Source: Phallusia mammillata (taxonomy: Eukaryota). From it: a stretch of DNA of 64,000 bases. The number at the start of each line of letters is the position of its first letter. Within the stretch, counting starts at the first letter, position 1. Shown in pieces: positions 1 through 53,254 of the stretch. Under the pieces are notes generated by a model. That model did not search any database and was not told where the DNA came from. It saw only the letters and a program-made list of their open reading frames with translations. Position numbers and translations under genes: made by a program. The DNA is taken from positions 18,228,001-18,292,000 of the forward strand of contig OZ281498.1 in the NCBI GenBank assembly GCA_965637545.1. The letters run 5' to 3'.

Positions 1-69
1 TATTGTACAAGTTTTGTACTTTATTGTATTTTTTTGCAGAAAAACAAATATAAGTGGAAAAGCGGTTAC

Positions 70-3000
70 CAATCGAACACATTCTTCCGATAAATCCACT
101 CAAACATTCGCAGTGGAAGTCACGCTTTCCAACATTCGAACAACTGCCACCATTGAGACATGGGTTGGGTTGACAACGATCCACTGAAATTTAACATTTT
201 TAGATACGAGTGATTAGGATTGTGCCTATTTAAATATAGGATACATAAACTTAACGTTCTCTTTTGACCAGATATTTATGTTATAATTTTACTTGTGTCA
301 AATTAAGTTATGTAATACAGTTAAGTTGACAAAAATGATAAAGATTTGGTACAATATGTTTTTACCTCTATTGCACTTGGATCCAACATATCCAGGAAGA
401 CAAAAACATTTTAATCCGCGCAAAGTGTTCAGGCAAGTTGCACCGTTGCCACAAAAATTGTTTTTGAATGCAGTTTCATCTGTTACATCAAAACAAAGTT
501 TAAACGTAAACGGCTATTGGGTGACCAATAAACTACCTGGTATATAGTAACATATTTGTTGGACATCAGACACTAATTGTATTGATAACTGTTCAAAAAT
601 GTGGTGCACGGATTGAACGTATAATAATTGTGTAATTATTATGCATTATGTTTTTTGGACACAGGCCAAAACAGAGACCTAATATTCAAATTATGTTTGA
701 AACATAATTCCAAATTTGATTTAGCTCATAAAACGACAACCTGGTTCATGAATGACTGATTGTTATTTGCAATTTTTAAATCAACTCTTACCAAAATATG
801 CTTTCCAATGCATCTTGACGGTAGGCTGACCCCAACCGAAATGCAAATCCGTCCTCCTGACCATAGCTTTAAATCCAAATCGTTTGACAACTATATCGGT
901 CACCTCAAAACGGTCGGGCAGTGTTTTGTTTCCAATAGCAATAGCAGTAATTTTTTCAGCCAACCCGCGGTGGCAACTTTCATAAGGTACTTTAATCGCC
1001 AACCTGTTGCTGTAGCCATAGTGACGAGTCACATTGTAACTGCCAGTCAGAATATCTGCAAAAATGCTAATATGGAAAAATGTACCAATCTTTTGCCATT
1101 ACTTTCTACATGTAGCACACATTTTTTGTTATCAAACTGAATGTGAATAAGACATACGCAAAGAACAGTCTTCGCCACCATATCCTTCGCTGCAAGAACA
1201 GTTGAATCCAGTGTCTGTATCAAGGCAAACACCGTTGTTTTTACATGGCATTGTGGAACAGTTGCGAATCTCTGAATACAGTAATGAAAAAAGCTTTTCG
1301 AGTTATCGAAGTTTTGCGAATTTTATCTTATTGAACCCACTTTCTTCACAGAACTCGCCCTTGTACTGCGAGGTACAGTTGCATACAAACTTGTTTTTGT
1401 GTATTATTGAACACTGAGCTCCATTTTTGCATGGATTGTTTGGAAAACCATCAGGAAGAAGAGAGTCTGTAAACAAAATAATCATTGTTTATCCACGGAT
1501 TATGTCCAAGCATTATGTAAGAAAAATATTAGAGAAACACCACTATGAGGATAAAAATATACCATTTTTGAAAATACCTGGATCAACAATACATCTTTCT
1601 CTACATTCTATTTTATTTCGTAAAAACATTTTATAAAATATCTAATACTTTAGAAGACTAAAAGAGTTTTAAATAGAACAGCAGTTAAATGTTGGATTAC
1701 AAAATATTCCATTTGATCACATTACTTACCAAAATAAGCGGTAAATTGAAGAGATAGACGATAAAACGCTCGGCGCACTACGTCGTTTGACGTACGACGT
1801 ACAGTAACGTCAAATCCGTTTCTGTGCACTTGCCTGAGATAAGGCGTGTAATTAAACGGCGAATTTCCCAGACTGATTAATTTCACAGCTACAGCTGTCG
1901 GCCTGCGGTTGTAGCATTCGTCAAAAATGAATGAGGCGTATTGATACCAAACTGATATGTCAACTTCAATGTGTCGTATACCGCTAATAAAACCTTTAAA
2001 TAATAACTAAATGTAATTGAATAACCTTGATTAAACTTAACCTATAAAGCAACAAGTGAAATATACATATACATATATAACAGCAATTGAAAATGCAACC
2101 TGCCTATTAACCCAATGTTTGTAACTATTTGAAGTAACAAAGCACTAAGTTTATAGACATGCTATACGTAAATCAATGTGAAAACAGCGCTAGTTATTTA
2201 GTTTATTGATAAAGTTATTATTCTATTTTGCGTTGTTTTGCATGCTTGTATTACTGTTGTGACTGGTAGCTTAATTGTTTAGCCCAGGGGCGTGCAACTG
2301 TTTATCGCGGTGGGCCACAACTTACAGTTAAAATAATGCTGAGGGCGAGACAACTAAGCAACATATACATTTTTTTAACAGCTTATTTAATAGCAAGGGG
2401 CACACAATCAAGTAACTCTTTGAGTACTCTTTGATCAATGGGATATGTGCTAACCGTTTCGTAGAATAAATCTCAATATATTTACTGCACCTATAAATCT
2501 TTTTACTGAATCATTAAAGGCTGTTCTTTCATAATGCACACGATGATGCAACAACGGGAATATGTCGTCACAGTAGATAAATCCTTATCACGGTGTGACG
2601 TTGTACAAATTTAAAATTGCCAGTGATGGTGTACAAATAGCAACATTACATGCTCTAACAGTAAAAAGTATTCATAATTGATAGAGTAATTTGAATGCGC
2701 GGGCCACGAAAATAGGTGCCGCGGGCCGTATATTGCACGCCTCTGGTTTAGCCTTTTTTACACTAAATTTTTTTGTGCTAATTTGCGCAACGGCGGTAGT
2801 ATATTTATTCATTATGCCACTGTTCAGCGTTTCATTTTATCAATGCTGACGATGCCAGAAGCTGTTGTTGAATAGCTAGACCAGCGGTTCCCAACCTTTG
2901 TGGTGCCGTGACCCCTTAAAACAGTTCCCAAGTTGCAGTGACCCCAACGATAAAATTAGCAGGCTTTATTGAATTTGCTTCTAAATATCGCGAACTTTAT

Positions 3001-6000: not shown

Positions 6001-8449
6001 ACAAAGTGAGTGATGCAGGTAATTATAAGGAGAAATCTAAGTTTTGAACAAGTGTTTTATGAGACTTGTAATACTGACCACGTTCGCAAAATGTGCCTGT
6101 GAACCGCCCAGTGCATTGGCAATAAAAGTTTTTCTGAGTGTCGAAACACGTGCCGTTGTTTTGGCACGGGTTGGACGCACAAGCAGGAACGTCTGTAAAA
6201 AATAGAACGTCAGCAAAAGATAACAACTTTAAAAGGAATTCGCTAATTCTAAATCGCAAGAATACATGTAAAACGTGTACGTGATTTTTTGGCAATACGC
6301 ATGTAATTACTGAGTTACTGAAATAGACTTCAAAAGAAAACAAATATATAAAGCACTAAACTGCTAAACCGTACTTGTGTTTTGTTAAGTGTATTTAAAT
6401 TTTGTAATAACTTCTTTGTACGGCAATATTATAGAAGCTTATATTACACCCTTCCTTAGCTTTACACAAGTATTACACTTTCGTAAAAACTCTTTACGGA
6501 CAAAAACTTTTTGTTAAAACTTTTTTTAATTTTTGTGGTTTAAGTCAAGTATCTTACAATACTATTTCAGGAAGGTCTTATCTTACAAACTTCACAAAGT
6601 CTTCCAGTATATCTTTCTGAACAGGCACAAACAAATCCATCCACTGTATTCGTGCACGTTCCATCGTTCCAGCATGGATTGATATAAAAATAACGGGGTT
6701 CTGAGATAAGAAATCAGTTAAAATGAGATCTAATAAGGTGCAATTAGTCAATTTGAACCTACCAAAATACGCTTTCCATTTCAGAGATATACTGGATACA
6801 TTCTTGTTGTCATTTTGTTTACGAGGCAACTGCAGTTTGGCAACAAATCCCCACAAAAATATCTGAGTTACTTGAATATCCTCAAGACCGGATATATTGT
6901 TGCTTACTGAAACATCAACCTTACCAGCTTTTATTGCTTTGCAGTTGCTATATAATATTGTAACATTTTCATTTGTAGATGTGATCCTGTGAACATGTGT
7001 TTCCGTAATATATTCTGAAAGTAGATTCTAGTTTTGTTATATGTAATATATTGTTGGTGATCAACTTTCAAGAAAAGCGTGTTTTTTGTGTCCAAAGAGA
7101 ATTTTTGTAATCCATGAAGCTACTTACTAAACGTGCAGACGTTTCCAGCAAACCCGATAGGACACAAACATTTGTAGCCATTGGTCAGTTCAACACACGT
7201 ACCACCATTGTCGCAGGGATTTACCAGGCAATGTACAAGCCCTAAAAATATATGAACGGTGAACAAACCTACTGATTGTGGTTCGAAAACTTGCAAAGTT
7301 GCAAAATATGGGCTTGTGAGGAAATGTTTCCCTTTCAATTGCTTCCTGTCAACAAAGTGCACCAGTTGATTGAATTACTTGCTTCACAAACCAAAGTCCA
7401 AAAGCCAATGTGTGCAGCAACAATCTGTCTTAATAGTTGTTTGCTATGAACATCTTACGCGTTTCACAAAGTTTTCCTCCATATTGTGATGGACAGTTAC
7501 ATCTAATTCCACTTTTTTGATTAGTACATGACGCTTCTTGATAGCAGGGATTGGACTTGAAGTTTGATGAGTCTATACAAAAAAACAGCAACATGACATT
7601 AGAATGTCAACAACAATTAATGCGCGGAACACTATACACGGACTTGAAAAGTAATTTGATCATAAACATTACTGCCAGAGTATAAATGCGCTGCAGTAGG
7701 TTATTTAATTTGTGTTGTACATATTAACCACTTACATTTTAACTTGAAACCTGCAAGCATCAAACAAACTGTGTAATTCGTAGATAATTGTTCTAATCTA
7801 AACATTTGTATTGTTTCCTAATATTTATTCCATACCAAAGAATGCTTTCCATGAAAGAATGACCCCGTTTTGCCACCAGTCGCGTCTGGTTTGATCCGTT
7901 CTCTGCACAAGAACTTGGAACCCCCATTCGTAAATGTTAAGAATTGTGGCATTAAACGTATCAGGCCACCGCTTATCTCCTTGGATCTCAGCCTTAATTT
8001 GATTTGCGGTTCCATTAAAGCATTGTTCGTACACAACATCGACAATTTTCCTCTCAGAGTATCTGTTTGATCCCACCTGCTTTTCATCTCCCACCCAAGT
8101 TTCACCTAAAACAACAACATAACACTCTTATTATTTGTAGAATAAAGAAATAGTCAATCAGACAATGCAAAGGTATATTCAAAAACCCTAGTTTTTACGG
8201 CGTACACATTTGTGCAGATTGGCCTATAACGGCCTCTAATATTATGCCAGATAGCAAAATGGGGATTAAATGCTTAAAAGTTATGTAAAACGCACAGTAC
8301 GTACTATAGCCCTTCTAGTTTATTACTGTCCGCAACACACTTTACATAATTGATAAAGATTAGAAACAAGATTTTAACTTACCTATCTCGCCCTTGGAAG
8401 AAACAACTGCAGCAAACACAACAAACAATAACAAACTAACTTTAAACAT
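70..8449 (-). CDS. Gene A: secreted protein, signal peptide + 6x[D (H-type-lectin-like) domain + 5-Cys EGF + 6-Cys EGF]; 3' end runs off the window
   Basis: Exons read by hand with AG/GT sites, internal exons phase 1-1, in transcription order: SP 8383-8449 ([22 protein letters not shown]); D 7836-8105; EGF 7459-7572, 7128-7241; D 6763-7014; EGF 6587-6700, 6079-6192; D 5500-5775; EGF 5135-5248, 4601-4711; D 4177-4434; EGF 3864-3980, 3684-3797; D 1730-1993 (absent from the ORF track); EGF 1341-1466, 1158-1271; D 792-1055; EGF 366-479, 70-183. The short stop-codon exon seen in paralogs B-D is expected left of position 1. Confidence 0.88.
2285..2745. mobile_element. hAT-type MITE
   Basis: TIR CAGGGGCGTGCAA...TTGCACGCCTCTG; perfect 8-bp TSD GTTTAGCC at 2277-2284 and 2746-2753. 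Confidence 0.85.
2882..3451. mobile_element. hAT-type MITE
   Basis: TIR CAGCGGTTCCCAACCT...AGGTTGGGAACCGCTG; perfect 8-bp TSD AGCTAGAC at 2874-2881 and 3452-3459. Confidence 0.88.
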
Positions 8450-9409: not shown

Positions 9410-12400
9410 TTAAGCCAATGTGGAATTGCTGTTGGCTATTTTGACGATGTCTGAAAGTAAAAACAAAGTAATTATTGAAACAAATTTATTTTAATTTCAC
9501 GTTCAACTCAGGAAATATTAAGCCATAATACTAACAAAAGATAAAAAAAGTGTTACAGGATTATCAAAAACAAAAATAATGAGTATTTAAGTGGCTACCT
9601 ATTGAGCACTTCCGTCCGACAAAACCGCTCAAACATTTGCACTGAAAACGACGCTTGGTCAAATTCGTACAGTTTCCACCATTAAGACATGGATTGGGTT
9701 GACATAGGTCCACTAAAAATAAGAATGATTGTTAGCAACCATAAACCTGGCTTCGTAGACTTGCTAGATAACATAAACCTTTTCAAATCACGACTTGTTG
9801 CTGGAAAAACTAGCGAGCTTATTTACCATTTCTGCACTTAGATCCGATGTATCCAATATGACATAAACATTTTAATCCAGTCTCAGTGTTTTGACAAGTT
9901 CCACCATTGAAACAGAACTGCTCGTTTAAACCACTTTTATCTGTTAAAACCAATGACAAAAAGAATCAGAATATTTAATTGTAAGTTTAGCAGAAAATAC
10001 TTGAGTTTCATGAAAATTGTAATGGTTTAAAAGACTGTCTAAATTCGCATGTATGATTGAAATGTCTTTGTATAGACAACACATCCTTACCGAAATATGC
10101 TTTCCAATACACCTTTACTGTTGGTTGCTCCCAACCGAAGCGTCTATCTGTTCTTCTCACAGCAGCTTTGAATCCATATCTTTTGATTGTTATGTCAGTA
10201 ACCTCAAAACGATCACGTAGTGCTTTGTCGCCCAAGGCAAAAGCGGTAACTTTTTTCGCTGGTTTCATGTGGCACTTTTTATAAACTACTTTAATCGACT
10301 TTCTGTTGTTGCGACCATAATGTCGACCAACAGCATGTGTTCCGGTGACAATTCCTGCCGAAATAAAAATCAAATTTAAGATGGTGTAATATTTTCTACA
10401 TAAAGCTTCAAAGATTCCACGTAGTCAATAAAACTCGTAACACATTGCCTGAAATATAACCCGTTTTTTTGATGCAAATGTTTTTAACTAGACAAAATCA
10501 CTGTTTTGTGCTTATAGTGTTTGTGCGTTTGGTAATTTTGCCACGTTAATCTTAATAATGCAGCGATAAAATACAGTCAAATTGATAAAAGCTTTGAATT
10601 TTGCCACTAGTTAAAGACGGTCAATTTGTTTCCCCACTACATCTGTATCTATTCATTCAAGACAAAGAAAAATGTACTTGCAAACAAAACATACTTAAAG
10701 AACAGTCTTTGCCTCCGTAGCTTGCGGTGCAAAAACAATTGAATCCAGCGTTTGTTGCCATACACAAACCGCCATTCTTACATGGTTGTGTAGAGCAGTT
10801 GCGTATCTCTGAAACATGTTACAATGGACCCATGTAATTCGTTAGTTTCTAAATGCAGATTTTGTTTTACCTTCTTGACATAATTTGCCTTTGTATTTTG
10901 CAGTACAATTGCATGTAAAATCATGCATACTAATTATCGAACATTGAGCTCCATTCTGGCATGGGTTTGTTGCAAAGTCGCTTGAATCTAAGATGAACAA
11001 TTCTTAGCTTGAAATCTCTGCGATTAAAGCGTTTCTGTAGTGGTTAAAAAACTACGCAATGTTTCGATTAATGTATCTTGAGTATACTATAGTTGTATCA
11101 ATCTTTATCGATGATATCATTGTCTACATTTGGTGATCTGCCATATCTAGGTAGGGTACACAAGTTAATTTTTTTTCGATATAACATTTATATTTTGTCC
11201 AGCGTTTCCTTCTTTTCAAGTTTGTAGAGCTTTTCTGGCAAATGTAATGTTATTCCGACGTTTCGACGTCCTATACAGGTTGTCGTCATCAGGGTAAAGC
11301 TCTACAAATTTAATATTATGCCTGGCAGCAATAGCTTATATGTTTCCTTCTTTTATCTCCAAAACAATATTTTACCAAATCGAAGGGTCAGAGGGTTAGA
11401 TACTGTTCAATCGATTGATTCTAAGTTTGCCAAATAGAAATTGAAAATATGTTAGATTACTACCAAGGGCTAAATGAAAAAAAAAAGGTTTTTATAGGCC
11501 CCTCGAGATGAGTTTACACAAGATACCAATGAGGCTATAAATCAATTGAAATGGACACTTATGCGCAAATATTCTGATTTCTGATTTAAAGATGAAAACT
11601 ATCGATACCGATTAAACATTAATTCTGTAACATACAAATTAGAGCCCATCTATACATGACAACAGTGTTCGAAAGCGGCTCACAAACTGTCGCAAACCAG
11701 CTCTTGTTGACTTTACGGCCATTGCTTACAGATATGAATAATTGTTACAAAGTTATCTCATTACCGAAATGGGCCTTAAATCGAAGCGACAGACGTTCAT
11801 AATATCTGTCTGCTGCGCCATACGAACGATGGATAGCGACTTGAAATCCGTTCCTTTTCACCCAGTAAATTCGAGGTGTGTAGTCAAAAGGGTGATTTTC
11901 CAGATTGAACAATTCCAAAGCCACACTCCTTGGAACTTGGTTATAGCATTCGTCGAACACAAATGTCACATATTGAGTCCAGCTTTTTCTTTCAATCTCA
12001 AAATGGCGGATTCCGCTGACCACACCTCAGAGTGGAAATAATTACATTTTGCACATAAAATCTGTGTCTGCTGATACGTAGATCTTTGCATTAGAAAAAC
12101 TGGCCCCAGGAGTAAATATAGACGATGTATTTTACTTTAGACACATTAGTATTATTACCCTATATGTATGTTATTTTCGTCACATGTTAATTCTGTACAC
12201 TTTCTTCAGAAAATTGGTCAAAAACATTCAAATTAGCAAAATTATCAAACCAAATTTGTGACCAAAAAATAACTTGAATACAAAAAACACACAAAAAAGC
12301 AGCTTATATGCATATTTTTTGTAAACGAGTGCACGTATTGCATTTTGTGCAGTAAATTTTACTTCATATACTTCTTATTTTTAAAGTGATTACTTACTTA

Positions 12401-15400: not shown

Positions 15401-18400
15401 CGCGTGCTAGTAAACCCTGGTTACTCAACAGTTGGTATGTTTTATGTTCTTATTTGATTTGTGTTTAACTTGTGTCAAAGTGTATTAAATCCGTAACTGG
15501 ACTTATTACAAGTAATTTGGGAGTAATCTAATGTAGAATATGACCGATCTATGTAGATTTAATTTGAAACCTGTGTGTACTGTTAAAACTGCTTATTGTG
15601 TGATGGTCGCTATGACGTCATAATGTGTGCGTTTGGCTTATGTATGTTATTTGTGGTTACAGAAAAACCGTTGCCGTTGCTATTGACGTTGTCTTGGTTT
15701 ATTCTTCAGCGTTGCCTATTATTGTCAAAAAAGAACATTCGTTGCAAATGCAAGAGTGGGTCGTCTTGGTTTATTCTTCAGCGTTGCCTATTATTGTCAG
15801 AAAAGAACATTCGTTGCAAATGCAAGAGTGGGTTGTCTTGGAGGACAGGCTGTAGGACGGGCGCGTTTTACAAAAAGGGTTACCTAGTGTGACGAACGGC
15901 GCAGGGCCAGGCTGCGCACCTAGCGGTCGTTACAATGAGAGTTTTTGTGTGTTAGGCAGTGCAAACCACTCATTGTTGAAAATGACTAGCCTGTGGTCTG
16001 TACAAGTCAAATTGTGTCATTATTATGTTTGGGTGCGACATTTAGAATAAATCCGATTAAGAACAAGTGTGTGAGAAAGGGCCGATCCCAAGCAATGAAC
16101 ACGTGTGCACATGTGTAATGTGGCTCTTTGTGGTAATACAGTAACAAATGTGGCTCTTAGGCTTTGCCTGGCTGGCCACCCCTGTTTACGTAGTTTCCAT
16201 ATTGTTTTCATTTTTTAAGTACATTAAAGATGCATATTGTTAAAGTTGTAATACACTAAATTATATTTTTTCAAATCATATTTAAGACCCATCAACAAAA
16301 CCACGGGGGTATGTTTGAAAACAAAGCATTGTTTAAATAACAAATACTTTTTCTGCAAGAACTTTCATTTGAAGTTTTTGTAACGTGAAATATGAACGTA
16401 TTTTTGACCTGCTTTTGCTCAAAGTTTCCGGAGACATTAAATGTAATAATTATACTGACCAATTTCACAACGGTATCCACTAAAGTGTCCGGGACACTTG
16501 CAATAAAACGATAATTGGGTGTCGACGCACGTGCCGTTGTTTTTACACGGATCGGATGCACAGAAACGAACATCTACAAAGAAAAAAATACTTTTTAGCA
16601 TGTTTATTTCTTAGTAGTCATGACAAGCGCAAAATACCAATAACAGAAAACCTTTTCAGTTAAAACAGTTTGTTTGATATCACAGATTTTAATTTAAAAA
16701 CATGACCATTGTACTAATCGAATAAGTGCGAATTGTCTGCAGGCTACTTATCATACATTTTTGTTGTGTTCGTTTTTTAAACTGGTAGTATAACCTACAA
16801 ACCGAAATTGTTCCCAGTCTGTATGTAACGGACAGTAACGCTCCCCTACAACAAAAACCTTTCCCGGTTAGTGTCGCAGTGGTATCTGAGTTAGTTGTGA
16901 GTGTATTAGGAACTTGGCCAAACGGTCTGGCGCGCCTGACCCATATGCAGACATAAAAAAACCTTGATCGGGATTCGTCCCCGGGAGAGTCCTGGGTTCG
17001 AACCCCGTGGAAAAAAAAATTTAAAAAAAAAAAAAAAAGTTGTGTTATACTTTTATGTAAAGTGCAAGTAAGATTGTTTGGACTATTTTGTAGTTATGAC
17101 GTTCTTTTTTCTATTTGGTTTAGGTGTTAAAAATCGTTTTCAATAACTCTTCATTTCTATAAAGTGCATGTGAAACTGACAGCTCTTATTCTGCCAGTCA
17201 AGAGACTGAAAGGTAGAATTGGCACAATGCTTGAGTTCTACGCTGCACATTAGGTTAAAAACTACGTTTCAGTCGTAACTTACGAAAGTCACAAAGCCTT
17301 CCAGTATATCTTTCTGAACAAGTGCAAACAAATCCATCCATCGTATTCGTGCACACGCCATGGTTCCAGCATGGATTGGTGTCAAAATAAATGGGTTCTT
17401 ATGAGAAAACATTATCAGGTCAAATGTCTCAGGCATATTACCTCAGTTTGAACGTACCGAAGTATGCTTTCCACTCAATCATTGCATTAGATACATTTAT
17501 TTTGGTTTTCAATTCGCTTGATATTTTGGCAACAAATCCCCACAGATGAATTTGACTCACTTGAACTTCCTCAAAGTCTGATGTGTTGTGACGCATGAAA
17601 ACCTTCACTTTTGTAGCTTTTGTTGCTTTGCAGATGCCATATACTATTGTGATATTTTCCCTATCAGGTTCAAACTTTAAATCGGTTTCTCCAGTAATGT
17701 ATCCTGAACGTAAAAAAAGCGTTTTTGGGATACAAGGTGTGCATAGAAATCATGGAACTTTTGCACTTAAAAACAAGCATTAGTACTTTAAGGTCAGTGA
17801 ATTTTCACATTTTTCTTGTTAAAAAAAGTAGTTGCTTTTATGTCAAATCAAAGTTAACAAATAGTGCTTTACCTTTGTATTTGATAAGTTGTTTTTAAAT
17901 TGTACAGAACACAGTTTACTTACTAAACAAACAGTGGTCCCCGCCATACGAAGTTGGGCACAGGCATTTGTAGCCATTTAACAAATCAACACACGTTCCA
18001 TTATTGTTGCATGGGTTTACAAGGCAATGAACAGGCTCTGCAATCAATCAATGCAATTTCAACACTTAAATGAAGAATGATCAATTTCAAAAGTATTTTG
18101 AAATCAGTGTGCTTGTAATGGTCAACAGGGTCAACAGTCCCAGTGGTTAGGAGGAAATCACAAACGGCTTACAAAGTTTTGTATTGTTTCCTGTTACCAC
18201 ATTCTTAAACATGTTGCCCAGTACTAAAGATTTTGTACGATTTCACTTGCATGTTGTTGCAAACATAATACATATTGAATGAAGTGTACTTGTTGTGGAA
18301 CTGTTAAAAAATATATGGTAACTAACAAAACGATATATAGCGATAAAATGGTTAAGTTTGTTACATTACCCAAAAAATGTTCCATTTAATATACATACAC

Positions 18401-20827: not shown

Positions 20828-23132
20828 AAGAAATAGGGAACAACTTGAATCTAAGATACGTTATCGCGTCCATGACAACTTGTTTGATTAAATTTGCGTG
20901 ATAATCGATTTATGTCGCTATCAATTGTCAACTTTCGCAACTCATCACAAATTACTATAGCCACAACACAAGTAAAGGAAAACATTTTCATCCTGTGATA
21001 TTAGTTTTAATCTAATCTAGTGCGTTGTGGTCCAAAACCATCATGAAGGCCAATGTTTTAATTTAATTTTAAAATTATTTTACCAATAATTTAAAAATTA
21101 CTAATAATTTAAAAACTCAGTCGTCAATTAATCTGTTTTTTATTTTGTATGTGGTGTCTTTAGTCAATTTAAAAGAAAAACGTCTGCAATATATTCATAA
21201 GTGTAACAAAAAGAAACGACAGGGAGTCAATATACAAGGTCTAATATTTGACAGCATTTAAGTGTCAGCAGTCAGTTTTGGGATGAACACAAATATTACA
21301 TGACAAGATAACGATACAATGCGAAAGAAAAACTTCGAATTTTTCTCGGATAAGAACCACTGATTAAACCTATGTGGAATTGTTGTTTTCTATCTGGGTA
21401 ATGTCTGAAAGTAAAAACAAACTAATTATACAAACATATATGTTTTAATTTCAGGTTTAATACAGGAATATCAGTTCCTGCTAACGTATACATTTACCTT
21501 ATAAGGTATAGGAAAAATCACAGCAACACTTTTTAGTTAAAGTTTTGTACAGAACAAATATAAGTAAAAAAACGGCTACCTATCGAGCACTTCCTTCCGA
21601 CAAATCCGCTCAAACATTTACACTGAAAACGACGCTTGGTCAAATTCATACAATTGCCACCATTAAGACATGGATTGGGTTGACATAGGTCCACTAAAAT
21701 TTAGAATGATTGTTAGCAAACATAAACCTGGCTTCGTAGACTTGCTTGATGTGGTTTAAAATAAACCTTTTCAATCAGAGTTTTGCAAACAAATGTTTTG
21801 TAGATAACTCTTTTTTTTAAACTGAAAAAAGGATGTAAGCCCCCCAAGCAACCTCAGTATATGTGAACCTTGTTTCACAACATGGGACTAACATAGTTAA
21901 ACTGATGCGTGAAAACAATTTACATTTTTCAACTGAACACGAGTTTTTGCTGGCAATATCGCAAGCTTGTTTACCTTTTCTGCACTTAGGTCCGATGTAT
22001 CCCAAAGGACAAGTGCATTTAAAACCATCTGGTGTGTTTTGACAAGTTCCACCATTGAAACAGAACTGGTCGTTAAATAAACTTTCATCTGTTAAAACGA
22101 AACAAAAAAATAAAGAATGTGTAAATTAAAGTTCATTAATAATTATTGAAATGCAAGGTCTTATCAAAATGTACTAGATGAAAGATGTGATTGTAAAGTT
22201 ATTGTGTAGGTAACATATCTTTACCGAAAAATGCTTTCCAGTACACCATTACTGTTGGCTGTTCCCAACCGAAGCGTCTATCTGTTCTTCTGACATAAGC
22301 TTTAAATCCAAATCGCTTGATTTCTATATCAGTCACCTCAAAACGACCGCGCAGATTTTTGTCGCCCAAGGCAAAAGCAGTTACGGTTTTTGCTGGTTTC
22401 ATGTGGCACTTTTCATAATATACTTTAACTGATTTTGTGTGTATTCGGCCATAATTACGACCAACAGCATATGTTCCGGTGCCAATTTCTGAAAAATATT
22501 AGTATGATTAAATAATTGCTTCATAAAACTTTTAAGTTTGCATGTAGTGGCAACAGAACTGGTAACACATTGCCGAAGTTTCTTGTGGTGTTTAGGATGC
22601 AAAACTTTTTAACAAAGGAAATCAATTTTATAGGTAGTATTTGTGTGCTAGGTAAAGTTGCGTTTTCATACAACGAAAAAATAAGTTACCAAAGCTTTAA
22701 ATTTTGTCACTGGCTAAAAATGGTAAACTCTGTATTCACACAATACAGCTGTGCCTAGTTTTATGACAAGTCAGTTTCACACAAAACGTACGTAATGAAC
22801 AGTCTTTGCCGGCGTAGCCTTCAGAGCAAGAACAGTTAAATCCAGTGTTTGTTGTAACACACAAACCGCCGTTTTTACATGGTAATGTAGAGCAGTTGCG
22901 GATCTCTTCATTTAAAAGATTGTTATTTTGGACCTATTAAATCTCTTAGTTTCTGAAGAGAATTTTGTTTTACCTTCTTGGCACAATTTGCCTTTGTATT
23001 GTGCTGTACAGTTGCATGTAAACTCACGCAAATTAATTATCGAACATTCAGCTCCGTTCTGACATAGGTTCGTTGCAAAGTCGCTTGAATCTAAGATACA
23101 CAATTTGTAGCTTTAATTATCTGTTATGAAAG

Positions 23133-24415: not shown

Positions 24416-27400
24416 CTCTAGGGAAATCAGACATAACAGGTTAAAATTAGTTAAATTATCAAACGAGGTGGTTTCACATAGAAATTTAACGTGAATATAT
24501 GCATAAAGATGAGATACCTGCTGGTTAACAAAACCGCGCAAGAGCAACAATCTTTACCTGCTACAGAGCGTAAATATTACAACTTCTGCTGTAGAGTTTA
24601 CTTTTGTCATTAACTTTGTAATTTTACTCCAATAAAGATTGCATGCTGGTAGCAAGATTATCGTCAACTTACTCATTTCACAGTTTTGTCCACCAAATCC
24701 TTTAAGACAATAACACTTATAGTAATGTTCTGTGTTCACGCACGTTCCCCCGTTTTGGCACGGCTGAGTAGAGCAATACGGCAACACTATCAAAGGGAAT
24801 TAACAAATAGTTTAAGAATGTGGCCATGTTGGACCAGAGTTGTATGTGGGCCTAAAATTGTGAAGTTGTTATTTTGCAAAAACGTGTCTAAAAGTGCCTA
24901 ACGTTGTAAGTCGGACTGGGCTTTACGGACCGGGTTTGGGCTTAGGTCTCCTTAAAACGAGCCTGATGTGGGCCTGGATATTTAAGTAGCCAGTTGCTGG
25001 ACCTGACATAATATCAAAAAGCCTTAAATCGCATTTTAAATGACTAGACGTCTATTGTGTTGTTTTGGTTTTTCCTGAAGGCTACCATATATAGGTCTGT
25101 CAATCAAACTTTCGAGCATTAACGCGCATTTCTCAAAAACGATTTGGGTTTGGGTCGGGTTTCGTGCTTGTACTTTCGGCTTCGGACCTCGTTCGGGTTC
25201 CAATTTCATGCCCATTTACAACTCTGGGGCCTGTGTGAAGGGCTGGTCGAATCAAGCCCATTTGTTAAAATTAAAGTTGGAACCCGAAAACGTTTCGATT
25301 TGCCTGGCCCGACCCTGGACTTTTTTTACAGACATGCTTTCACAGCATTTTTTACAGACAAAACGGCACCAACCGGTTTCGCAAAATCTTCCTGTATATC
25401 GCTTCATACACGTGCAAGAAATCTCGTTCAAACTGTTCGTGCATTGACCGTGATCTCCACAAGAAGTAAAATCAACGCTTGGAGAATCTACATAAAAATA
25501 CAGTGCAAACATTTTTAGTTTAAAATACTTAACCTGCCTTACCTATGTCAACGTGTGAGATGCCAGAACTATTGACAAACTTGAATCCTTATTATACACG
25601 TAAGTATTTTTTTAAGGCACGTATCGTTTGCGTTGAACTATTTGCTTGATATGTCTGGCTCTTATTTAGTAAAATAGAATTATAGTTTTTCAGAGAACTG
25701 CTTCTCATATAAGTGTAATACTTTAATCACAAAAATGCGTCCGTCTCGGGCTTACTCTGATTTCAAAGCTTACCAAAATATGCTTTCCACTCCACAACAA
25801 CGTCTGATGCCACAGAATAGCATCGTCACCGTGTCTGGTTAGAGACGCAATGAAACCACCAGAACGAATTTCTTGCAGTTGTACGTTCACAAGATTTGAA
25901 ACTTGGCCACGTATTGACAAATCAACACCGAAAGCGATTTGACTTTTGCACGAGTCATACACAACCGTCAAATTCCTTGTGTTGGAAATCCATTTATTGT
26001 TATTTACAACTTTTTGCCCGGTTACGTAACCTAATTTGTTTGTAAAAGTACAATATGGGGATTAAAAACTAGCAACGATTTTGTTACATTTCATGGAGAT
26101 TGCCAAGCATGTTAAATAGAGACGGCAATTTGTAATTGGCCGTTAGGTATTTTGCCAAAAAAAATTAAATTTAGCCGTTTAAACAATTTGAATTAATGTT
26201 TGTGTTTATTAAACTTACTATTAGTGCAGTTTTGTCCTGTCAAACCTTCAGGGCACTGACATTGATAACTAGCTTCGTTCTCGGTACAGTTTCCACGATA
26301 ACATGGGGAGGGATAACAAAATTGAAGTCCTACAAAAAATAGTAGAAAACGACCGAGATATTTTTTTTAAAAACCAAACAGATTAAGAATCAAAAAAGCC
26401 TAACGTGGAATTAAAAAACGATTTAGCTCAATCAATTTTCTGTTCTTTCATTCTTAATTATATAGTTTAGTTATATACATCAGTGGATGTATATGTTGCT
26501 AAATATTTGTAGATTTTTAAAGACCGGTCCGCGATGTAATGTTAGTTTCAAAAACGGTCGGCTGTGCAAAAAAAGGTTGCCGACCCTGATATGTTTGTCG
26601 TTTCCTTTAAAGTATTAAACAGCGATTAACTTCTTTTCCTGAGGCTGCTTCTCCGATAGTTTATTTAAAAAGCAAAACAATCAACAGCCCTAAAACGATG
26701 AATAACTAAGTCCTTTTACTTAAAACATAATTTAAAACTTACGCTTTTCACAAAATTCTCCCGTATACCCAGGTATGCAATTACAAATTCTTCCAGCTGG
26801 ACTATTTTTGCAGCTGTAATCATGAACACATGGCGAATGTCGAAAATAATAAGAATCTACAAAACAATAGGTAAAAATGTTTCACCAGAGTTACTTTAGT
26901 GAGATAAAAGAAAGTGTGCTCTAACAGCGGTGAGATTTTGCGTACAAAGGTATACAATTGTTTAAAATAAAGTACACTACAAGAAAACTTTTCGTGATCT
27001 TTTTTCAATCGTTTGAAAGTTGATACATATGAATTTGAACCTATTGCTAAAACAGGTAAAAGTAAACACTTATATGATAATGTGGTAAAGTTAAATTACA
27101 TATGTGAGTTTCATGATGAATCTCTTAATCGTCTATACCAAACATTGCTTGATAACGAAGATTCACGTTGAATTGACTCCTTTCAAAATCATCACGATCA
27201 GTTCTCCATATTTTGACCTTAAAACCCCATGGATATATACCAAGCACTGATGAGTTAAACGCGTCGGGCAAAGTGCTTGACCCCCTGACGCTCGTTTCCA
27301 CTCGTATTGCAGTTCCGGTGAGACATTCATCATATGAAATGTTTCGTATTAAAATGAACGGAGGTTCAAACACATAGTGAGGTGGAATCACAACAACATC

Positions 27401-33000: not shown

Positions 33001-36000
33001 TCATCATTTGGTGCAGCAATTAGGTACAGAACTTATTTGGTTCAATTTTGATTACTTAAAGATCAAATTAAGTTTTTTAAACGAGCTAATTTACATCACA
33101 AAGGTTTTGTAATTGCACTTACAGCATTACAAGAATAGTTTTAAGAATCATGATTTTCACACACAATTTTTCTACTGGAATTTCTCTGCAGGAATCTTTT
33201 TGTGGCATATGTCATTGTAGAAATAAAGCAAAAAAGATTTAAACTGAGTCGGTTCGTAAATTTTATCTATGTTACCAACCTTTTTCACAGTTAAGACCCT
33301 CAAGTCCTTCTACACACTGGCACCTGTAGTAATTCTCTGTATCCACACACGTTCCCCCATTTTTGCATGGTTGTGTATTGCAATAAGGCAGCTCTGTCAT
33401 TACAACAAAAATACCTAATATTTGCATTACAGAAAAATATCAGATTGTTTGCAAAAGTGACCAACCAGTCTCACAAGAACTTCCTGTAAAACGTCCATTG
33501 CAATTGCAAATATTTCTCTCCAAGGTGTTTGTACATTGACCATTGTATGAACATACATTTGAATTGACAGTTGGAGTATCTACAGGAGATAAAAAGTATT
33601 GTGATTATTGTGGTACACCAGAATAACTGAAAAAAAGTGAAGACTTTTTATTTCAGCAGGTAAAGGTACGTTTTTTTAAAAAATAACAATAAAATTAACA
33701 GAAAAATGGATTTAAATTCAACGAACGGCAGATCTTTTATTAGCCTGCAGGACGTTGTTTTAGTAAATGGTAATATCATATTTTTGGAAAAAAAATCCTG
33801 TAAATCTTTACCAAAATATGCTTTCCAATCAACAACAACTTCAATCAGATCCCACTTGATTGTAGGATTACTGCGTCTGGTAAGGGACGCAATGAAACCA
33901 CCGGTACGAATTTCCTGTAGTTCAAAATCAACAAAATTCGTTACTTGACCACGTATGGACAAGTCGACCATGGAAGCATTTTTTGGTTTGCATGACTGGT
34001 ACACCACAGTCAAACTGTTCAAGTTTGAAATCCAGTCGTTGTTATTGGCAACTTTTTCTCCAGTCACATAAACTTGAAGATAAAAAATTATCACATTAAT
34101 ATTGTGTTTGTGTAGATACAAATACTTACGAAAGCTTTAGAATGATTCAAGAAATATTGTTTATTTTCTTCACTAAAAAACCTAAGCCGCTCCCAGAGAC
34201 GAATCCCAAACAAGTTTTGTGTATAGGTCTGCATATATAAGCAAGACGCGCCGAACCATTCGGCCTAGTTTTTACTGAATTATCTCTGCTGCCATCTAAC
34301 GAACCAAATTCCAAAAGGTGTAACAAATTTCTTGACCAGTACAGCGACGGTTTAGCTTTTATAATGTTTCGAAACAAGTTGTTAAGTTTCATTACGAATT
34401 CTCTATGGGCCGAAACGAAATAGAAAACAAACTATAATCCTTCAAATGCAAAATTGCATTCGGACATATTACAGTATTTTTACTATCATAAAAGTAGATT
34501 ATGCTTGGTCTAAGTAACAGATATGTTAATGAACTTACTAATGGTGCAGTTTTGTCCTGTCAAACCTTCAGGACACTGACATCGGTAGCTGGTTTCGTTC
34601 TCGATGCATTTTCCACGATAACAGGGCGAAGGAAAGCAAAATTGAAGTCCTACAAAAATAAAGCAAACACTGACCCCCATAAATTATTGCAATCAAGTTT
34701 AAAAACAAGTGTAAGTTCTTCAAGGGTGAAGCCTGTAATAGTTTAAATAGCAAATCGCGCTGTGACGAGCTTGCGTTTAATTCTTTCTCCTTTGTTTATC
34801 GTGCACTGTACTAGTCGCATTCAGTGTTATTTACCCTGATGAAGGCGACCTGCATAGGAGGTCGAAACGTCGGTATAAAAATACAATTGCCGAAAGAGTT
34901 CTACAAATTTGATATTATGCCTGGCAGCAACAGCTTAACAGCTTATATACGGTACAGTTAAAATAACTTTTTCAGCGTACCTCGACGGGCATTTTTTTAC
35001 TTTTAATGTTGTTGTGCAGCGGTTTTAATATTTCCAGACTACTGTAGGACTAAAACGATTTTTCGTTTCGTTTCCAACCACTAAAAGTTTCGAAAAGATG
35101 GGCACAGTACTTGTCTACGAAAACCAAAAAGATTATTGTTTCGTACGCCTATCGCATAAGTCTCCGCCAAAACCATCCATACAATAACACTTTCTTCCAG
35201 CTGATGGACTGTTCGCACATTTGTGGCTGTTAACACACGGCGGGTTTCGAAAGTTGAAAGTATCTGTGAGAAAATAATATTATTTTTACCAATAATTTTT
35301 AAATGCCAAAAGACTAGTCTTCAATAATAAACAAAAATGAAATGTTGCAACTTATTTAAAAATCATTTTTCAAGTATTAATCAGAAATTACCTACCAAAT
35401 AATGCATCATAATAAAGAAATATTCCATTCTTTTTCCACGCGAATTCGCTACCATAATTTCTCCACACCTTGACCCGAAACCCCCATGGGTATGTTCCTA
35501 TCACGGATGAGTTAAAAACGGCTGGCAAATACCTAGACCCGCACACCCGAGTCACTACTCGTAACACATTTCCCGAAAAACATCGACGAAATGTGATGTT
35601 GCTCACCAAACTGAATGGAGGCTTATACGCATTGATTGCTGGGAGCCTCACTCTTTTATGAAGAGATGGTTCTGTAAAAAAAAAATTAAAGGGCAACTTT
35701 GCTACTTTAGAACAGTATATACGGATCTATTCATAAGTTTAATAGTGAAAATAACGGCATGTCGTTTTTTTACGTCTATTTGGGCCGTTATTTTCACCAT
35801 TAAACTTTGCTACAAACTGGTAAAAAGTAAAGAGCACAACAAAGTTTGTTTGTTTAAGTAAAGTTTTGGTTACAGAAACTAAAATTTGTGTTGTAATGCT
35901 AAAGCTAGTGTTTATTGTCTCAAGCAATTAGATACATTGGAGCAAATACTGTACAAAAACACTGACCGACTTCGCAATGAAGCCCCCTGAATCTTTCGCT

Positions 36001-39000
36001 GCAGAGGCATTTGTATGACCACTGGGTGTCGACACACGTTCCGTTGTTTTTACAGGGATTGGATGCACAGTCAGGAACAACTTCAATATAGAAAATCGAA
36101 TGACATAAATGTTAAATCCTAATTATAAACATATTTGGACATATACTTGCCAAAACAGCTAATAAATATGACACAAACTCCTTATATAGTAAATCCTATA
36201 ATATGCTATGCTGCAGGCTTTTTTGAAGAAATAACCACTTACAAACTTCACAAAGTTGTCCGGTGTATCTTCTGGGACAATGGCAAACAAATCCACCTTG
36301 TGTATTTCTACACTGTGCATTATTCCAGCACGGACTGTCATCAAAGTACCTAGGATCTTTAAAAACAAATACCAAAATATGTAAAAACTAGTGTACACTT
36401 TGTAAGTGTCGACCTACCAAAATATGCTTTCCATCTAACTGTTGTACTGAATACAATATCATTGTTGCTGTTAGACTTGTTTGGCAAATTTACTTCAAAT
36501 CCCCACAAATATATCTGAGTAGTTTCAGCATCCACAAAATCGGAAAAGTTTTCACTTAACAAAACGTCGACCTTAGTAGCTTTCACTGCTTTGCAACTCT
36601 TGTATGCTATAGTGATATTGTTACGTGCAGATGAGTATCTGTAATCATTTTCCCCAGAGACAGTCCCTAAAAGCAAAATTCAAATGTAACAGATTCAGTT
36701 TTCAATAAAAGTTAAACAAAAGTGATGTACTCTAAATGTAAATAACTAATGTTTTACTATTTGTTTTACACTAAAAAATTAAAACATTAATATAATTTGT
36801 AAAAACCATTCTTAGGTCACACTATGAAAACGTAAGATGATTTTTCAGCCTATCTCTCACTGAGTGTGCAGTTTTCTCCACCGAACCCGTTTAAACACAA
36901 ACATTTGTAGCCATTTGGCAAATCAACACAAGTTCCATCATGTTGACATGGATTCACGAGGCATAATCCTGCAATTGATAAAAACAATGAAAAACACTAG
37001 AGCAACAATTATACCAACCACCAAATGTAGTTCACAGTTGCATTGCAATGTTGCAAAACTTGCACTTTGGACGCAATTACTCTACTTTAATAAACCCTAC
37101 GTGCTTCCTATTACTGGAAAGTTTGATATTAAAGCTAGTAATCGACTTACGTTTGTCGCACAAATTTCCCCCATAACCAGGCATACATTGGCAACGAGGA
37201 CCATCGATGCTATTGATGCATCTAGTAGCATTTACACATGGTTTTTCCAACTTATTGATTGAATCTGCAATCGCAAACATATTTTTTATCCAGGATACAT
37301 GTTGATTGCTATCACTTTAAACCGAGTTTTGAGCCCGGCAACGTAACTTTTTGTGAAGTTTTGCATCAAAAACTTCAAGTGTAAAAGAATTTTTGCTTCA
37401 GAATCTATTGCTTTGTACACCAATAACCTACTTACCAAAATACGCAGTCCAATGTAACCTCGCGTAACTTTGATCCCACCCAGCTTTTAAGTCATCAGTT
37501 CTATGGACAGCAACTCTAAAACCTCCTTCTAAAATTGCCAACACAGAGGCATTAAACGTGTCAGAATATTGCGATTCTCCTACAACGTGTGCAGAGATTT
37601 CCGTTGCTCTTCCACTTAAGCACCGACTGTACGTGACTTCTATGGTTTTATCGTATGGTGGAAAATATCTGTTGGACCCAACTTGATGACGGCCGCTTAT
37701 CTTTTTTACTGCAAACAACAGCAGGATGCAATGATCAAAAAAATCCTTTTTGATCACATGAGAATTAGGTTGTAACATAAAAATTATATTACAGTACGCT
37801 GGACCCATTAAAGGCACCATACCGAATCAGTCGGTCACCAACTATTCACTATATGGCAAGACGTAGGCTAGAAAAATCTAGCCTGAAAGTCACGACGTTC
37901 GTGCGGGACTCGCCCTCTACCAACTTATCTACGCAGGGTCAATGGAGAACCCGGTGAAAGTCGAACACTACCACTGTTGCCTGCCTCGTATGCTGTACAT
38001 GTCAGCTTCGTAGTAGGGGATCGCCAGATTATCCAGCATCAGTTAAGATGAACATAAATTCATAACTGGGATCAGCCCTGAAGCGTCTATGCAGACCAGC
38101 GATCACGTTACACTCATATGTTAATCACAGTACGTCAGGCCCTTTAAAATTATATGTATCTAATGTCCGTTGCCAGATGTGTTACATATAGTCATGTTAT
38201 TATTAGTTCACCTCAAAACATCTTTTAGTAGCAGTGGTGGGATACAATTTTTTTGTCAGCTGGTTCTATCACAAAAGTTATATTTTTCAGCCGGTTCTGT
38301 TACAAAAAGTCCGTCGACAGTAATGCTAACCGGTTCGCTGATCTCATAAAATGTCGTAAGACGGTTCTATAGAACCGGTTCGATCCGGCTTATTCCCACC
38401 AATGGTTAGTAGGATATGTGCATACAAAAAAGGAAACTCACCTATTTCGCAATTAGACCCTTCTGTGCCTTTTGGGCAAGTACAGTTGTAAGTGTTGGGA
38501 ATCTCGGTGCATTGGCCCGTGTTGCAAGGGTGGGGATAACAATGAACCAGAGCTGAAAGTACAAGAATGGTTTAACTTTAGACTAACAATTGTCAAAATG
38601 TCTCTCAACGCACGAAGGTGACCCACCTATATTACATAATTCCCCAGAGTAGCCAGGATTGCAGATACACACTCTTCCAAAATTTACTTTGTTCTCACAC
38701 CGGCCTTGCACACATGGCGAGTCCTCAAACTCTCGAGTACCTAAGTACAAATTTGTTTTTGCATGAAAAAAATGATAACCAAAATGCATACTGTTGTTGA
38801 ACATACCGAAAGCCGCTGTATAAGCAAATTCCGCATGAGTTTGTCCCCAGAGTCCATAGTGGCGTCCCGTCCTCACGACAAGTGCTTTAAATCCCCAAAG
38901 ATGAACCTCAAGAATCGTGATGGTAAACCTATTTGTGTATAAAATAATATCTGCAATGCTGGCATTGACGGATTTAGGAACCTCTTTAAGACAACGATCG

Positions 39001-41974: not shown

Positions 41975-42951
41975 GTCGGCTTTCTGCTTTGAACGCAACT
42001 AATGCAATCTGCTGCAGCAGATGTAGGTCTAGTTCAGCTTTTCTCTTCGATTCTTAACTTTGACCCTACTTTAACGAACCAGACAACATATCACCTCTAA
42101 ATAGCATAGCATATTGTATAACATTTTAATAGCTTCACATAACGATATGTATTGTTGTTAAAAATTAAACATTTTAGGGCGTTGCTACTTTACAACACAA
42201 AGATTTGTTTGTGTGCTTTAATAACTTTCACAAATGTTGCCCAGTTGATGTTATAAGTACAATAGTTACCAATTATCACTAGTCTACATAACTGCATTGG
42301 GCGTGAAACTGGTACATGTAATTGCAATTGCACGTTCATTGTGGTGAAATGTTCTATACAATATTGTGTACACTTTCCACGTTAAGTTGTTTCGTGAATT
42401 TGAATCAGCTTGGTTTGAGGAGCTGGAAAAGTAACAGTTTTTACCACAAGCCCCGCATAAACATTTGTCGTAGGTTCGAAATTAGCCGCAGGCTAAATTT
42501 GTAAATGCCTGGATCTGTTTCGGTTGTATACCATGAACAATGGTTGGCCACAGTACTTTGGACAGATGGCAAAAAATTACCTGTCATCAATAATGGTAAA
42601 ATTACTTTATACTTCTGAGAGAATAAAACTAATAAAAATGCGACAATGCTCTGTATAGTTGCTAATACTAAATAGTTGCTAATACTAAAATAATAGTTCA
42701 TTATTGTTTTTTACGACTGCGTAAATTTACAAGACTAGTGGAGGTGGGCAATCATAATTTTACTACCCCGGATGATGGAGATTAAACCAAACTTTCCTAC
42801 ATAAACAGTCACTTTCTATCACAGTGATTGATAGACATTAGCAGGGTGCCGCCAAAAGAGAAAGGCTAACGTGCCTTTCTTGGCGGTTTACCGCAATAAT
42901 TATATGATCACAGTTGTCGTGATATATTTGCAGGGAAGCAGAACGTTGAAA
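41975..42951. promoter_or_regulatory. Candidate bidirectional promoter region between head-to-head genes D and E
   Basis: 977 bp between the two divergent ATGs; block ~42290-42600 is strongly conserved in the duplicate at ~54350-54640. Confidence 0.5.
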
Positions 42952-51700: not shown

Positions 51701-53254
51701 TCGTTACAAAGCTATCTTTAGTAAGTCAGGTTTTTCCTAATTGTTGTAGTTACTATTACGAATGTGAGCGTAGTGTTCACTCACTCGTTGTATCTACCTT
51801 TTCTGCAAGTTTGCCCTGTATTACTTGTGTAATTATCGCCTTTATAAGTTCTTTTAGTTTTGATTATCGGCTTTATATATTGTCAGACTGTTTTAATTCT
51901 ATTGTTTAGCCACTTTGAAACGATAGAATATGAAGAAGTTTAACAGTAACAGTTAAATATTATTACGAAAGCTAAATTGTTGCCATCCCAACTAAACGAT
52001 TTTTGTAAAGTGAATTAAAGGTTGAATCTACATTACACCTGTCACTTAAAGGGTAACAGATGAAAGTAATTAACGATAAAAATTTAAGATATTTAAAATA
52101 TATATTTTTTGTTTAAGAAACTCGGGATTTCTCTGCATCACCATGTGTAAGCGCGGAAAGCTGTACAAACAATGCTGAAGATGGAAGAGTGTGTAACTGC
52201 TCACCAGGATACTCTGGAGAATTTTGTGAAAAAGGTAAAAAATTCTCAACACAGCTTAGCATCTAAATCACCACATTACAGTTCACAACTTGAGACCAAA
52301 AGTCAAGTAACCTTACATTTTAATTCAAAACATAAACTTGGTGCTCAAAACAACTCATAAAATTGTTGTTTAGTCCTTTAACAAAAGTTTTTTTACAAAA
52401 CCAAAAAATCGAGACAGTCCTGTAAAGTCAATAGGGCGATCCAAGTTAAATGTATCATACGAAAGTAAACACATAGTTTAATATTTTTTAAATGATAAAA
52501 AAACAAAAAATAAACTGTATAGTAAGTGGTTTCAACCTGCTCGTAAGACATTCAAAGATGTAGAAGAGATACAGATAAAATGACTTGACATTTCAACTGA
52601 AAGTCAATTCATTGGGTGTTTGATTCTATTTTTTTATGTTACAGTCACAAGAGTAAGTGGAACAAAAATTATTGGGTCTCTCGAAGACAGGCCGCCTAGC
52701 ACCAAAACAGTCAACGTCGTCTATGAAAAATGCCACGGTGGAAGGGCCACTGAAATTAATGCAACTGTAAGGGGCTCCACCCGTTACAGTGATACCTTTG
52801 AGGCAACAATCACGGACATCTTTACCTGGGGCTTTCGGGCGGTGGTGAGGAGAACTGACCGCCTGAACAGTGGATGGGGTCAGAGAAGAGTTAGACTTCT
52901 TTGGACCGCAAATTTTAGTAAGTTTTATAGGTTTGAATTTCTGAGGAAATCGTATTTTATGATTCTCAATGTGTTTACCGAATAGTTTGGGTCTAATCAT
53001 AAGAGTTGAAATTAAATGATAAAGTCTTGCATAAGTCGTTTGCTTTTGGTGTAAAGTACTTTGGTCATAAGATTGCAAGTAAGGTTCTTCAAAAAACTCA
53101 AAATGATTCGAAACTATTGTTTAAATTCGCAGATACACAACAGGATTTTAAGAGTCCTTGTGCAAATGGGGCAAGTTGCACCAATACTAAAGGAAAAAGG
53201 ATCTGTAATTGTCCACCAGGCTTCAGGGGAGAAACATGCAAAATATCAAACTAA
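42952..53254 (+). CDS. Gene E: secreted protein, signal peptide + 6x[D + EGF + EGF] + 2x[D + 5-Cys EGF] (~1271 aa predicted)
   Basis: Exons: SP 42952-43009 ([20 protein letters not shown]); D 43197-43466; EGF 43647-43760, 44664-44777; D 44942-45199; EGF 45570-45683, 45851-45964; D 46222-46497; EGF 46739-46855, 47044-47154; D 47284-47556; EGF 47735-47848, 48381-48491; D 48777-49052; EGF 49348-49461, 49841-49951; D 50187-50441; EGF 50607-50720, 50788-50901; D 51445-51720; EGF 52118-52234; D 52645-52917; EGF plus stop 53133-53254. Sum 3816 nt, in frame. Confidence 0.88.
45721..45762. repeat. (CT)n microsatellite
   Basis: Near-perfect TC dinucleotide run in an intron of gene E. Confidence 0.9.
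48055..48359. repeat. Two degenerate family-2 hammerhead-element copies
   Basis: 48055-48125: minus-strand CTGATGA-GATCTTATAAGTC-AAAA plus a plus-strand GTGTACACTGTCTGCAGCTT tail. 48308-48359: AGCTGCA-TTGATGG-GACC-ATATA-GGTC-AAAA. Both have core mutations. Confidence 0.6.
51214..51320 (-). repeat. Degenerate family-1 hammerhead-element copy
   Basis: Contains GACGTTTCGACGTCCCATACG and the GCCTGGCAGCAACAGCTTAT tail shared with the 11217, 29174 and 34748 copies; CTGATGA is mutated. Confidence 0.6.

Follow-up and report, generated by a model that had tools for sequence, protein, structure and literature searches.

Six tandem D-EGF genes in Phallusia mammillata

We analyzed a 64,000-nucleotide stretch of the genome of the ascidian Phallusia mammillata (contig OZ281498.1, positions 18,228,001 to 18,292,000 of the forward strand), hereafter called the window. 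The window has a G+C content of ∼35%, an exon-intron organization, and no N runs, and it carries six tandem paralogous genes, A to F, assembled from repeated three-exon modules. Each module encodes a domain D of ∼90 amino acids, an epidermal growth factor (EGF)-like domain with five cysteines (EGF5), and a canonical six-cysteine EGF (EGF6), with one domain per exon. Genes A to D (1-41399, with their modules spanning 70-41399) lie on the minus strand, and genes E and F (42952-64000), which follow the same design, lie on the plus strand; each chain contains six to nine D copies interspersed with EGFs. D exons were found with a profile derived from the window's own sequence, and EGF exons were found by a combined pattern and splice-site search. 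Every D, EGF5, and EGF6 exon in the window has AG/GT borders in phase 1-1. Signal-peptide exons precede the genes, as at 41912-41974 (minus strand) in gene D, and the products are therefore predicted to be secreted.

The first module of gene A (7128-8105, minus strand) was taken as the target module. Upstream of it, the signal-peptide exon (8383-8449, minus strand) is a hydrophobic, Met-initiated open reading frame (ORF) of 22 codons plus one base that ends at a phase-1 donor (GTAAGT) and splices to the D exon at 8105, yielding the split codon GGT (Gly). The D exon (7836-8105) encodes a single cysteine at 8020-8022, within the motif VVYEQC. The EGF5 exon (7459-7572) has a Phe codon (7559-7561) at the position of the first EGF cysteine (C1), five residues before C2 (7544-7546), and its C3 codon lies at 7526-7528. 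The EGF6 exon (7128-7241) encodes all six cysteines. The split codons within the module are GAC (Asp) and CGG (Arg). Raw ORF readings show D ending in a conserved "FG"; the F is Phe, whereas the G comes from the donor G/GT and is not a Gly residue. The extra cysteines of such readings (e.g., CEVC) represent intron read-through. The cysteines of canonical EGFs pair C1-C3, C2-C4, and C5-C6. Because C1 is missing from EGF5, its C3 has no partner inside the domain.

Cysteine pattern of D and the EGFs

A preliminary description of the window had reported that the EGF directly after D always has five cysteines, that the second EGF has six, and that D carries one invariant cysteine in a Y..C motif. 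The exon-level gene models bear this out. Exactly five cysteines, with C1 replaced, are present in 38/38 EGFs directly after D (37 from the exon finder and the terminal one at 53117-53251), whereas 36/36 second EGFs have six, none of them directly after D; the module order is strictly D, five-Cys EGF, six-Cys EGF. The window holds 38 D exons, one of which (25731-26030) is frameshifted, and the Y..C cysteine is found in all 37 intact copies. At a mean column identity of 36%, the only invariant columns of the window D alignment are this cysteine and the G and F of a GF motif. The five cysteines of EGF5 are likewise invariant across 41 copies (mean column identity, 40%), and the position of C1, five residues before C2, is mostly occupied by Phe or Tyr. 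The module losses described earlier were also recovered: in gene B, the signal exon is followed by a six-Cys EGF on its own (17924-18037), in gene E, six-Cys EGFs are missing at two places (after 52234 and at the end of the gene), and neither an orphan D nor an orphan five-Cys EGF occurs in the window. The extra cysteines noted in two D copies of gene D are genuine as well, one within RVCGS in the D exon at 35396-35671 and one within WAC in the D exon at 41127-41399, whose acceptor at 41399 is homologous to that at 8105.

The genome contains at least 111 D exons, ∼75 of which fall in a ∼210-kb main cluster (G000:C5, 18.09-18.31 Mb) that includes the window. The others lie at C3 (21.50-21.69 and 24.87-24.98 Mb), C8 (0.59, 1.99, 8.63, and 16.35 Mb), and C2 (21.70 Mb). 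In the divergent cluster at C3:21.50-21.69 Mb, 20/20 five-Cys EGFs directly follow a D with its cysteine, in architectures in which D-EGF5 is succeeded by one to three six-Cys EGFs or by eight; most of the six-Cys EGFs of the eight-EGF tail, found in one gene, have a calcium-binding-type start (I/T-D/N-E-C). Three five-Cys EGFs on C3 were considered as orphans (L039, 6001; L040, 5240; L041, 4784) and rejected as such, since very divergent upstream D exons were found for them at 8 to 11 bits, all with the cysteine.

In total, 58/58 five-Cys EGFs examined in the genome (38 from the window, 20 from the C3 cluster) are directly preceded by a cysteine-bearing D. Among 60 D copies located before an EGF5, the cysteine is the only invariant column, at a median pairwise identity of 21% and a minimum of 5%. 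C1 is absent from 0/69 six-Cys EGFs in other positions, and the sole D that lacks the canonical cysteine and has an EGF after it (L056) is followed by a six-Cys EGF. A Fisher test on these counts (58,1;0,69) gives p = 4e-36, which is not an independent-sample probability because the copies are related by descent, although they span great divergence. The order D(Cys)-EGF5-EGF6 was also found on contigs from other samples (L004 to L006), and three further contigs (L001 to L003) carry Cys-less D-D tandems without EGFs.

D arrays without EGFs provide a further comparison. At C3:24.87-24.98 Mb, 9/11 D exons with the canonical cysteine have an even number of cysteines, mostly two per D, versus 5/60 of those before an EGF5 (p = 1.3e-6). 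This excess suggests that the D cysteine needs a partner, which is found elsewhere when EGF5 is absent.

Domain D resembles H-type lectins

Single D copies are not recognized by Pfam: H_lectin (PF09458) matches 2/37, with a best E value of 0.022, below threshold. PDB sequences searched with a profile of the D alignment gave nothing at E values up to 10. A search of 1.84 billion representative proteins with the D profile found only 64 relatives. These include bacterial tandem-repeat proteins (P0010, P0012, and P0014) detected at E values of 5e-15 to 1e-13, which Pfam itself calls H_lectin at 1.8e-20 to 3.6e-12. The bacterial relatives and D have the motifs DTF, GF, R-x-D, and W-x-A in common; where D has its cysteine, the bacterial proteins have the Pro of an F-x-x-P-F motif. 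By shared motifs, the bacterial repeats appear nearer in sequence to ascidian D than the snail agglutinins are; the latter were missed entirely when PDB sequences were searched with the D profile. In a wider set of bacterial tandem H_lectin repeats (P0010, P0012, P0021, P0022, and P0048), DTF, GF, R-x-D, GWGQ, and W-x-A are shared with ascidian D.

The predicted structure of D (see below) was compared with known folds by VIA-align. Model 1 matched discoidin II (2vme; Z, 8.7; root mean square deviation, 2.7; 86 residues aligned), Helix aspersa agglutinin (4q56; Z, 8.1), Helix pomatia agglutinin (HPA; 2cgy; Z, 7.9), and coral SLL-2 (3wmp; Z, 6.5), and model 2 gave similar values, so that an HPA/discoidin II-like sandwich was recovered from both models at Z values of 7.5 to 8.7 over 81 to 87 residues; since a VIA-align Z of <8 can mean a mere common arrangement, the fold assignment leans on the profile result too. 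Given the profile link to Pfam H_lectin proteins together with the fold match, D is, as judged from profiles and models, a divergent domain of the H-type-lectin fold, a six-stranded beta-sandwich. A SEA domain and other 90-amino-acid modules were considered as identities of D and dropped on the same two grounds.

Predicted placement of the D cysteine

The best relative of the gene products is P0001 (717 amino acids), a P. mammillata database entry comprising a spliced run of four D-EGF5-EGF6 modules. It maps to G000:C5:18295663-18300281 (minus strand), a few kilobases past the window end. Its exons are 97 to 100% identical to the genome, and each split codon at the predicted phase-1 borders yields the P0001 residue. 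If P0001 is transcript derived, as we assume, the one-domain-per-phase-1-exon design is thereby confirmed on a neighboring paralog. The database name of P0001, "Notch precursor," is wrong; the protein is encoded by the next paralog of the cluster and is not a Notch. Besides P0001 itself, a word-index protein search with it returned only generic EGF proteins (Notch, Jagged, Crumbs, and SNED1), and the protein collection so searched held no second spliced relative of 394 to 1255 amino acids.

Two modules of this paralog that are 31% identical to each other, P0001:53-215 (model 1) and P0001:543-704 (model 2), were folded with AlphaFold2. The folding alignments comprised the four P0001 modules and the window D exons, after removal of EGF-only rows and of a read-through ORF (38628-39107). 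The mean predicted local distance difference test (pLDDT) and predicted template modeling (pTM) scores were 90.2 and 0.75 for model 1 and 88.1 and 0.70 for model 2. For a chain of three small domains, such scores are high, and they imply that D, EGF5, and EGF6 have a fixed arrangement in the models, both of which pack D against EGF5. The EGF5 and EGF6 regions superpose on Notch EGF pairs at Z values of 4.6 to 6.0 and 36 to 41% identity, with C2 to C6 in register.

The structural alignments also locate the D cysteine. The VIA-align rows for 7alj, 9b3g, 5mwb, 4xl1_D, 4d90, 4cuf, 5fm9, and 5fma start at residue 30 of model 1, and those for 7alj, 4cud, and 5fm9 start at residue 28 of model 2. In each model, this starting residue is exactly the D cysteine, which in these rows is the sole D residue carried into the EGF superposition. 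In the rows for Notch1 EGF11-13 (4xl1_D, 4cuf, and 4cud), it pairs with Notch1 residue 456; the other rows start at residue 94 of the model, which is matched to 458 or 459, so that C2 of the model falls on residue 461. That NOTCH1 has a cysteine at 456 is documented by the variant p.Cys456Tyr (PMC6175364). The PDB titles name T466, which sits just before C3, as an O-fucose site. As a cysteine five residues before C2 and ten before T466, residue 456 corresponds to C1 of EGF12. In both models, the D cysteine thus occupies the spatial site of an EGF C1, the place expected for a partner of C3, and the geometry is that required for bonding to C3. DSSP assigned isolated bridge residues in model 1 at 31 (one after the D cysteine) and 94 (three before C2) and none at the equivalent place in EGF6, an assignment that fits packing of a D loop on the N-terminal arm of EGF5 in the model.

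D and EGF5 were also supplied to ESMFold2 as separate chains. The target module's own pair scored 0.47 versus 0.02 for the best control, a result graded as weak support on a scale whose mark was passed by 51/78 solved complexes and 2/108 mismatched pairs and on which scores of ≤0.60 were obtained by only 5/78 solved complexes yet by all 4 mismatches that passed. The runs agreed in ≥97% of contacts, with a partner pLDDT of ≥85.

A putative interdomain disulfide between D and EGF5

We infer that an intrachain disulfide between the D cysteine and C3 of EGF5 stands in for the missing C1-C3 bond and joins the two domains, a reading to which we give a probability of roughly 75% on the basis of the cysteine pattern and the models. 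The preliminary description had proposed this pairing, and it gains support from the models, in which the cysteine falls on the Notch C1 site, from the 58/58 adjacency, from the counterexample of L056, and from the weak two-chain score. Every available computational test able to contradict a bond between the D cysteine and C3 came out in its favor. In the mechanism that we propose, the D cysteine would belong to the loop that follows the second strand of D and lies at the sandwich pole where the D C terminus is also found. It would fill the space where a normal EGF holds C1 and bond to C3, so that EGF5 would be completed in trans by D and the two would fold as one rigid unit, with EGF6 as a dispensable spacer. 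Such a bond might make the chain a stiff rod along which lectin-like domains are displayed at regular intervals.

The preliminary description had gone further and called D plus EGF5 an obligate supradomain. One side of that claim stands, as EGF5 never occurs without D; the other does not, since D with its cysteine also occurs without EGF5. The dependence would be one-way, of EGF5 on D only, because D is also found in D-D arrays and beside fibrinogen-type and C-type-lectin domains.

Several points weigh against the proposed bond. The D cysteine is retained in D-fibrinogen proteins (P0029, P0058, and P0060, with an odd total of cysteines in P0058 and P0060) and in a C-type lectin-D protein (P0035); its conservation where no EGF5 follows shows that other partners or roles are possible for it. 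A second cysteine is present in five of the D exons before an EGF5, and for the one in the D exon at 35396-35671 (RVCGS), no compensating cysteine was found in gene D, so that it may be an odd free or interchain cysteine. The placement of the D cysteine is deduced from the residue at which the structural alignments begin, AlphaFold may tend to bring cysteines together, and the paired D and EGF information in the folding alignment came from four modules only. Among the RNA runs on record, none contained the window stretch, and runs from the same species almost lacked its sequence words.

A broader though doubtful possibility is that the D cysteine is a general docking cysteine of this animal branch of H-type-lectin-like domains, positioned at the pole where the chain exits and stapling D to whichever module follows. 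Its partners might then be a C1-less EGF, the C-type-lectin-like domain of P0044, and perhaps the next D in EGF-less arrays. P0044 consists of a D with its cysteine kept and a C-type-lectin-like domain, and the second domain contains one odd cysteine. If the docking cysteine were general, exon shuffling could create rigid two-domain units whenever an incoming module had lost one cysteine.

The competing explanations all do worse than the bond between the D cysteine and C3. The best of them, which we nevertheless consider improbable, is that both odd cysteines form interchain disulfides and produce covalent dimers or networks. Odd-cysteine EGF repeats of teneurins covalently cross-link chains, H-type lectins are typically oligomers, and the D cysteine persists in architectures without EGF5, some with an odd total of cysteines (P0058, P0060, and P0035). 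However, both AlphaFold2 models place the D cysteine at the C1 site of EGF5 in the same chain, a strict adjacency of EGF5 to D is unneeded for cross-linking, and six to nine modules per chain would mean 12 to 18 interchain bonds. It is somewhat less probable still that the partner of the D cysteine in EGF5 is not C3 but another cysteine and that the disulfides within EGF5 are rearranged: the exact partner cysteine is not seen in the models, and noncanonical pairings are known from integrin I-EGF and laminin-type EGF domains, among others, but EGF5 is in register with Notch EGF12 from C2 to C6 at the identity given above, and the D cysteine falls on C1, whose canonical partner is C3. Least probable of all is the absence of any bond, with both cysteines free or buried as thiols and the pattern inherited by repeated duplication of one D-EGF5-EGF6 ancestor; all modules do descend from such an ancestor, which makes the counts nonindependent, but the cysteine alone is invariant in D at 21% median identity and survives in almost unrecognizable copies, all five EGF5 cysteines are invariant, and free thiols are unusual in secreted multi-EGF proteins.

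Relation to known domain architectures

The components of the module have known counterparts. The H-type lectins (PF09458), which include the Helix pomatia and Helix aspersa agglutinins, the C-terminal domain of discoidins I and II, and coral SLL-2, have a six-stranded sandwich in common with the modeled D; whereas the H-type lectin is there a free trimer, characterized by binding of GalNAc or related sugars at the trimer interface, D is strung as six to nine copies per chain between EGFs. EGF5 and EGF6 are comparable to the canonical EGFs of Notch, Delta, and Del-1, and both regions of the models adopt the EGF fold of two small hairpins, as in Notch1 EGF12-13 and others. Unlike those EGFs, EGF5 lacks C1 and has an aromatic residue at its position in the sequence and, in the models, the cysteine of the preceding domain at its place in space. 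The six cysteines that characterize EGF (PF00008) are accordingly incomplete in 38/38 window and 20/20 C3 copies of EGF5 and complete in 36/36 copies of EGF6. With Pfam, EGF6 scores above the cutoff (E = 5.5e-10), and EGF5 scores below the respective cutoffs for both PF00008 (E = 0.2) and EGF_3 (E = 0.0017).

Partial precedents also exist for the proposed bond. In integrin beta, the disulfide of PSI and I-EGF1 similarly ties an incomplete EGF-type module to a cysteine of another domain, but the partner has a different fold, the bond is long-range in sequence, occurs only once in each chain, and is no substitute for C1-C3. Teneurin EGF repeats 2 and 5 resemble EGF5 in having five paired-type cysteines and one odd cysteine; the odd cysteine there links two chains, whereas here the models put the partner in the same chain. 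The selectin C-type lectin-EGF unit likewise has a lectin domain packed rigidly on a following EGF, but with another lectin fold, no interdomain disulfide, and all six EGF cysteines. A literature search, outside whose reach many subscription papers lay, found no description of this D-EGF architecture or of the bond. Since the H-type lectin fold, the EGF, and the interdomain disulfide (for which integrin beta PSI/I-EGF1 and teneurin EGFs are partial precedents) are known, the combination is a variant and not a new kind.

If the bond is real, the module would be a clean natural case of the first EGF disulfide being supplied by a neighboring domain of a different fold. It would account for the constant pairing of two separate phase-1 exons in a family that exon shuffling has otherwise shaped, and the folding unit to be expressed for glycan-binding or structural work would be D plus EGF5 and not D alone. 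The D family is large (at least 111 D exons), secreted by prediction, lineage restricted, and unstudied, and it may constitute a diversified lectin-like recognition system of ascidians.

Additional features of the genes and of D-containing sequences

Some introns between D and EGF5 are very short, namely, 62 nucleotides (6701-6762) and 75 nucleotides (38732-38806), both on the minus strand. The latter is in frame and stop-free, so that D and EGF5 read as one ORF of 186 amino acids (38586-39143). The frameshifted D exon in module 2 of gene C (25731-26030, minus strand) is split across two frames, with profile positions 5-72 at 25801-26007 and 71-84 at 25769-25810, and gene C may consequently be a pseudogene, unless the assembly is in error there. 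Weak donors follow the last EGF6 of genes A to C; if these are unused, the chains would end in short read-through tails with one more cysteine (9599-9731, 21536-21700, and 2-190, minus strand), which contain YFCF, YICS, and YICF. Genes D and E are divergent, with signal exons ∼1 kb apart (41974-42952). The signal exon of gene D ends in KCEI, and its first D has WAC, where gene A has KGEI and WVG at the equivalent places; the joint presence or joint absence of these two cysteines suggests a second, N-terminal disulfide.

Some of the genomic D exons are single and resemble D-fibrinogen or D-C-type-lectin genes. At L049 (G000:C3:24975000-24983000), tandem D-like repeats match P0023, a protein with apparently several membrane-spanning helices and a weak, subthreshold match to the GPR128 N terminus (E = 0.0065); the cysteine of its repeats is at a different position, before the GF motif. 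Four contigs filed as metagenomic (L001 to L003 and L006; Joint Genome Institute samples 3300027611, 3300001913, and 3300001463) carry animal-type D exons with introns, and in one of these samples, Cys-less D-D tandems (L003) occur alongside a D(Cys)-EGF5-EGF6 module (L006).

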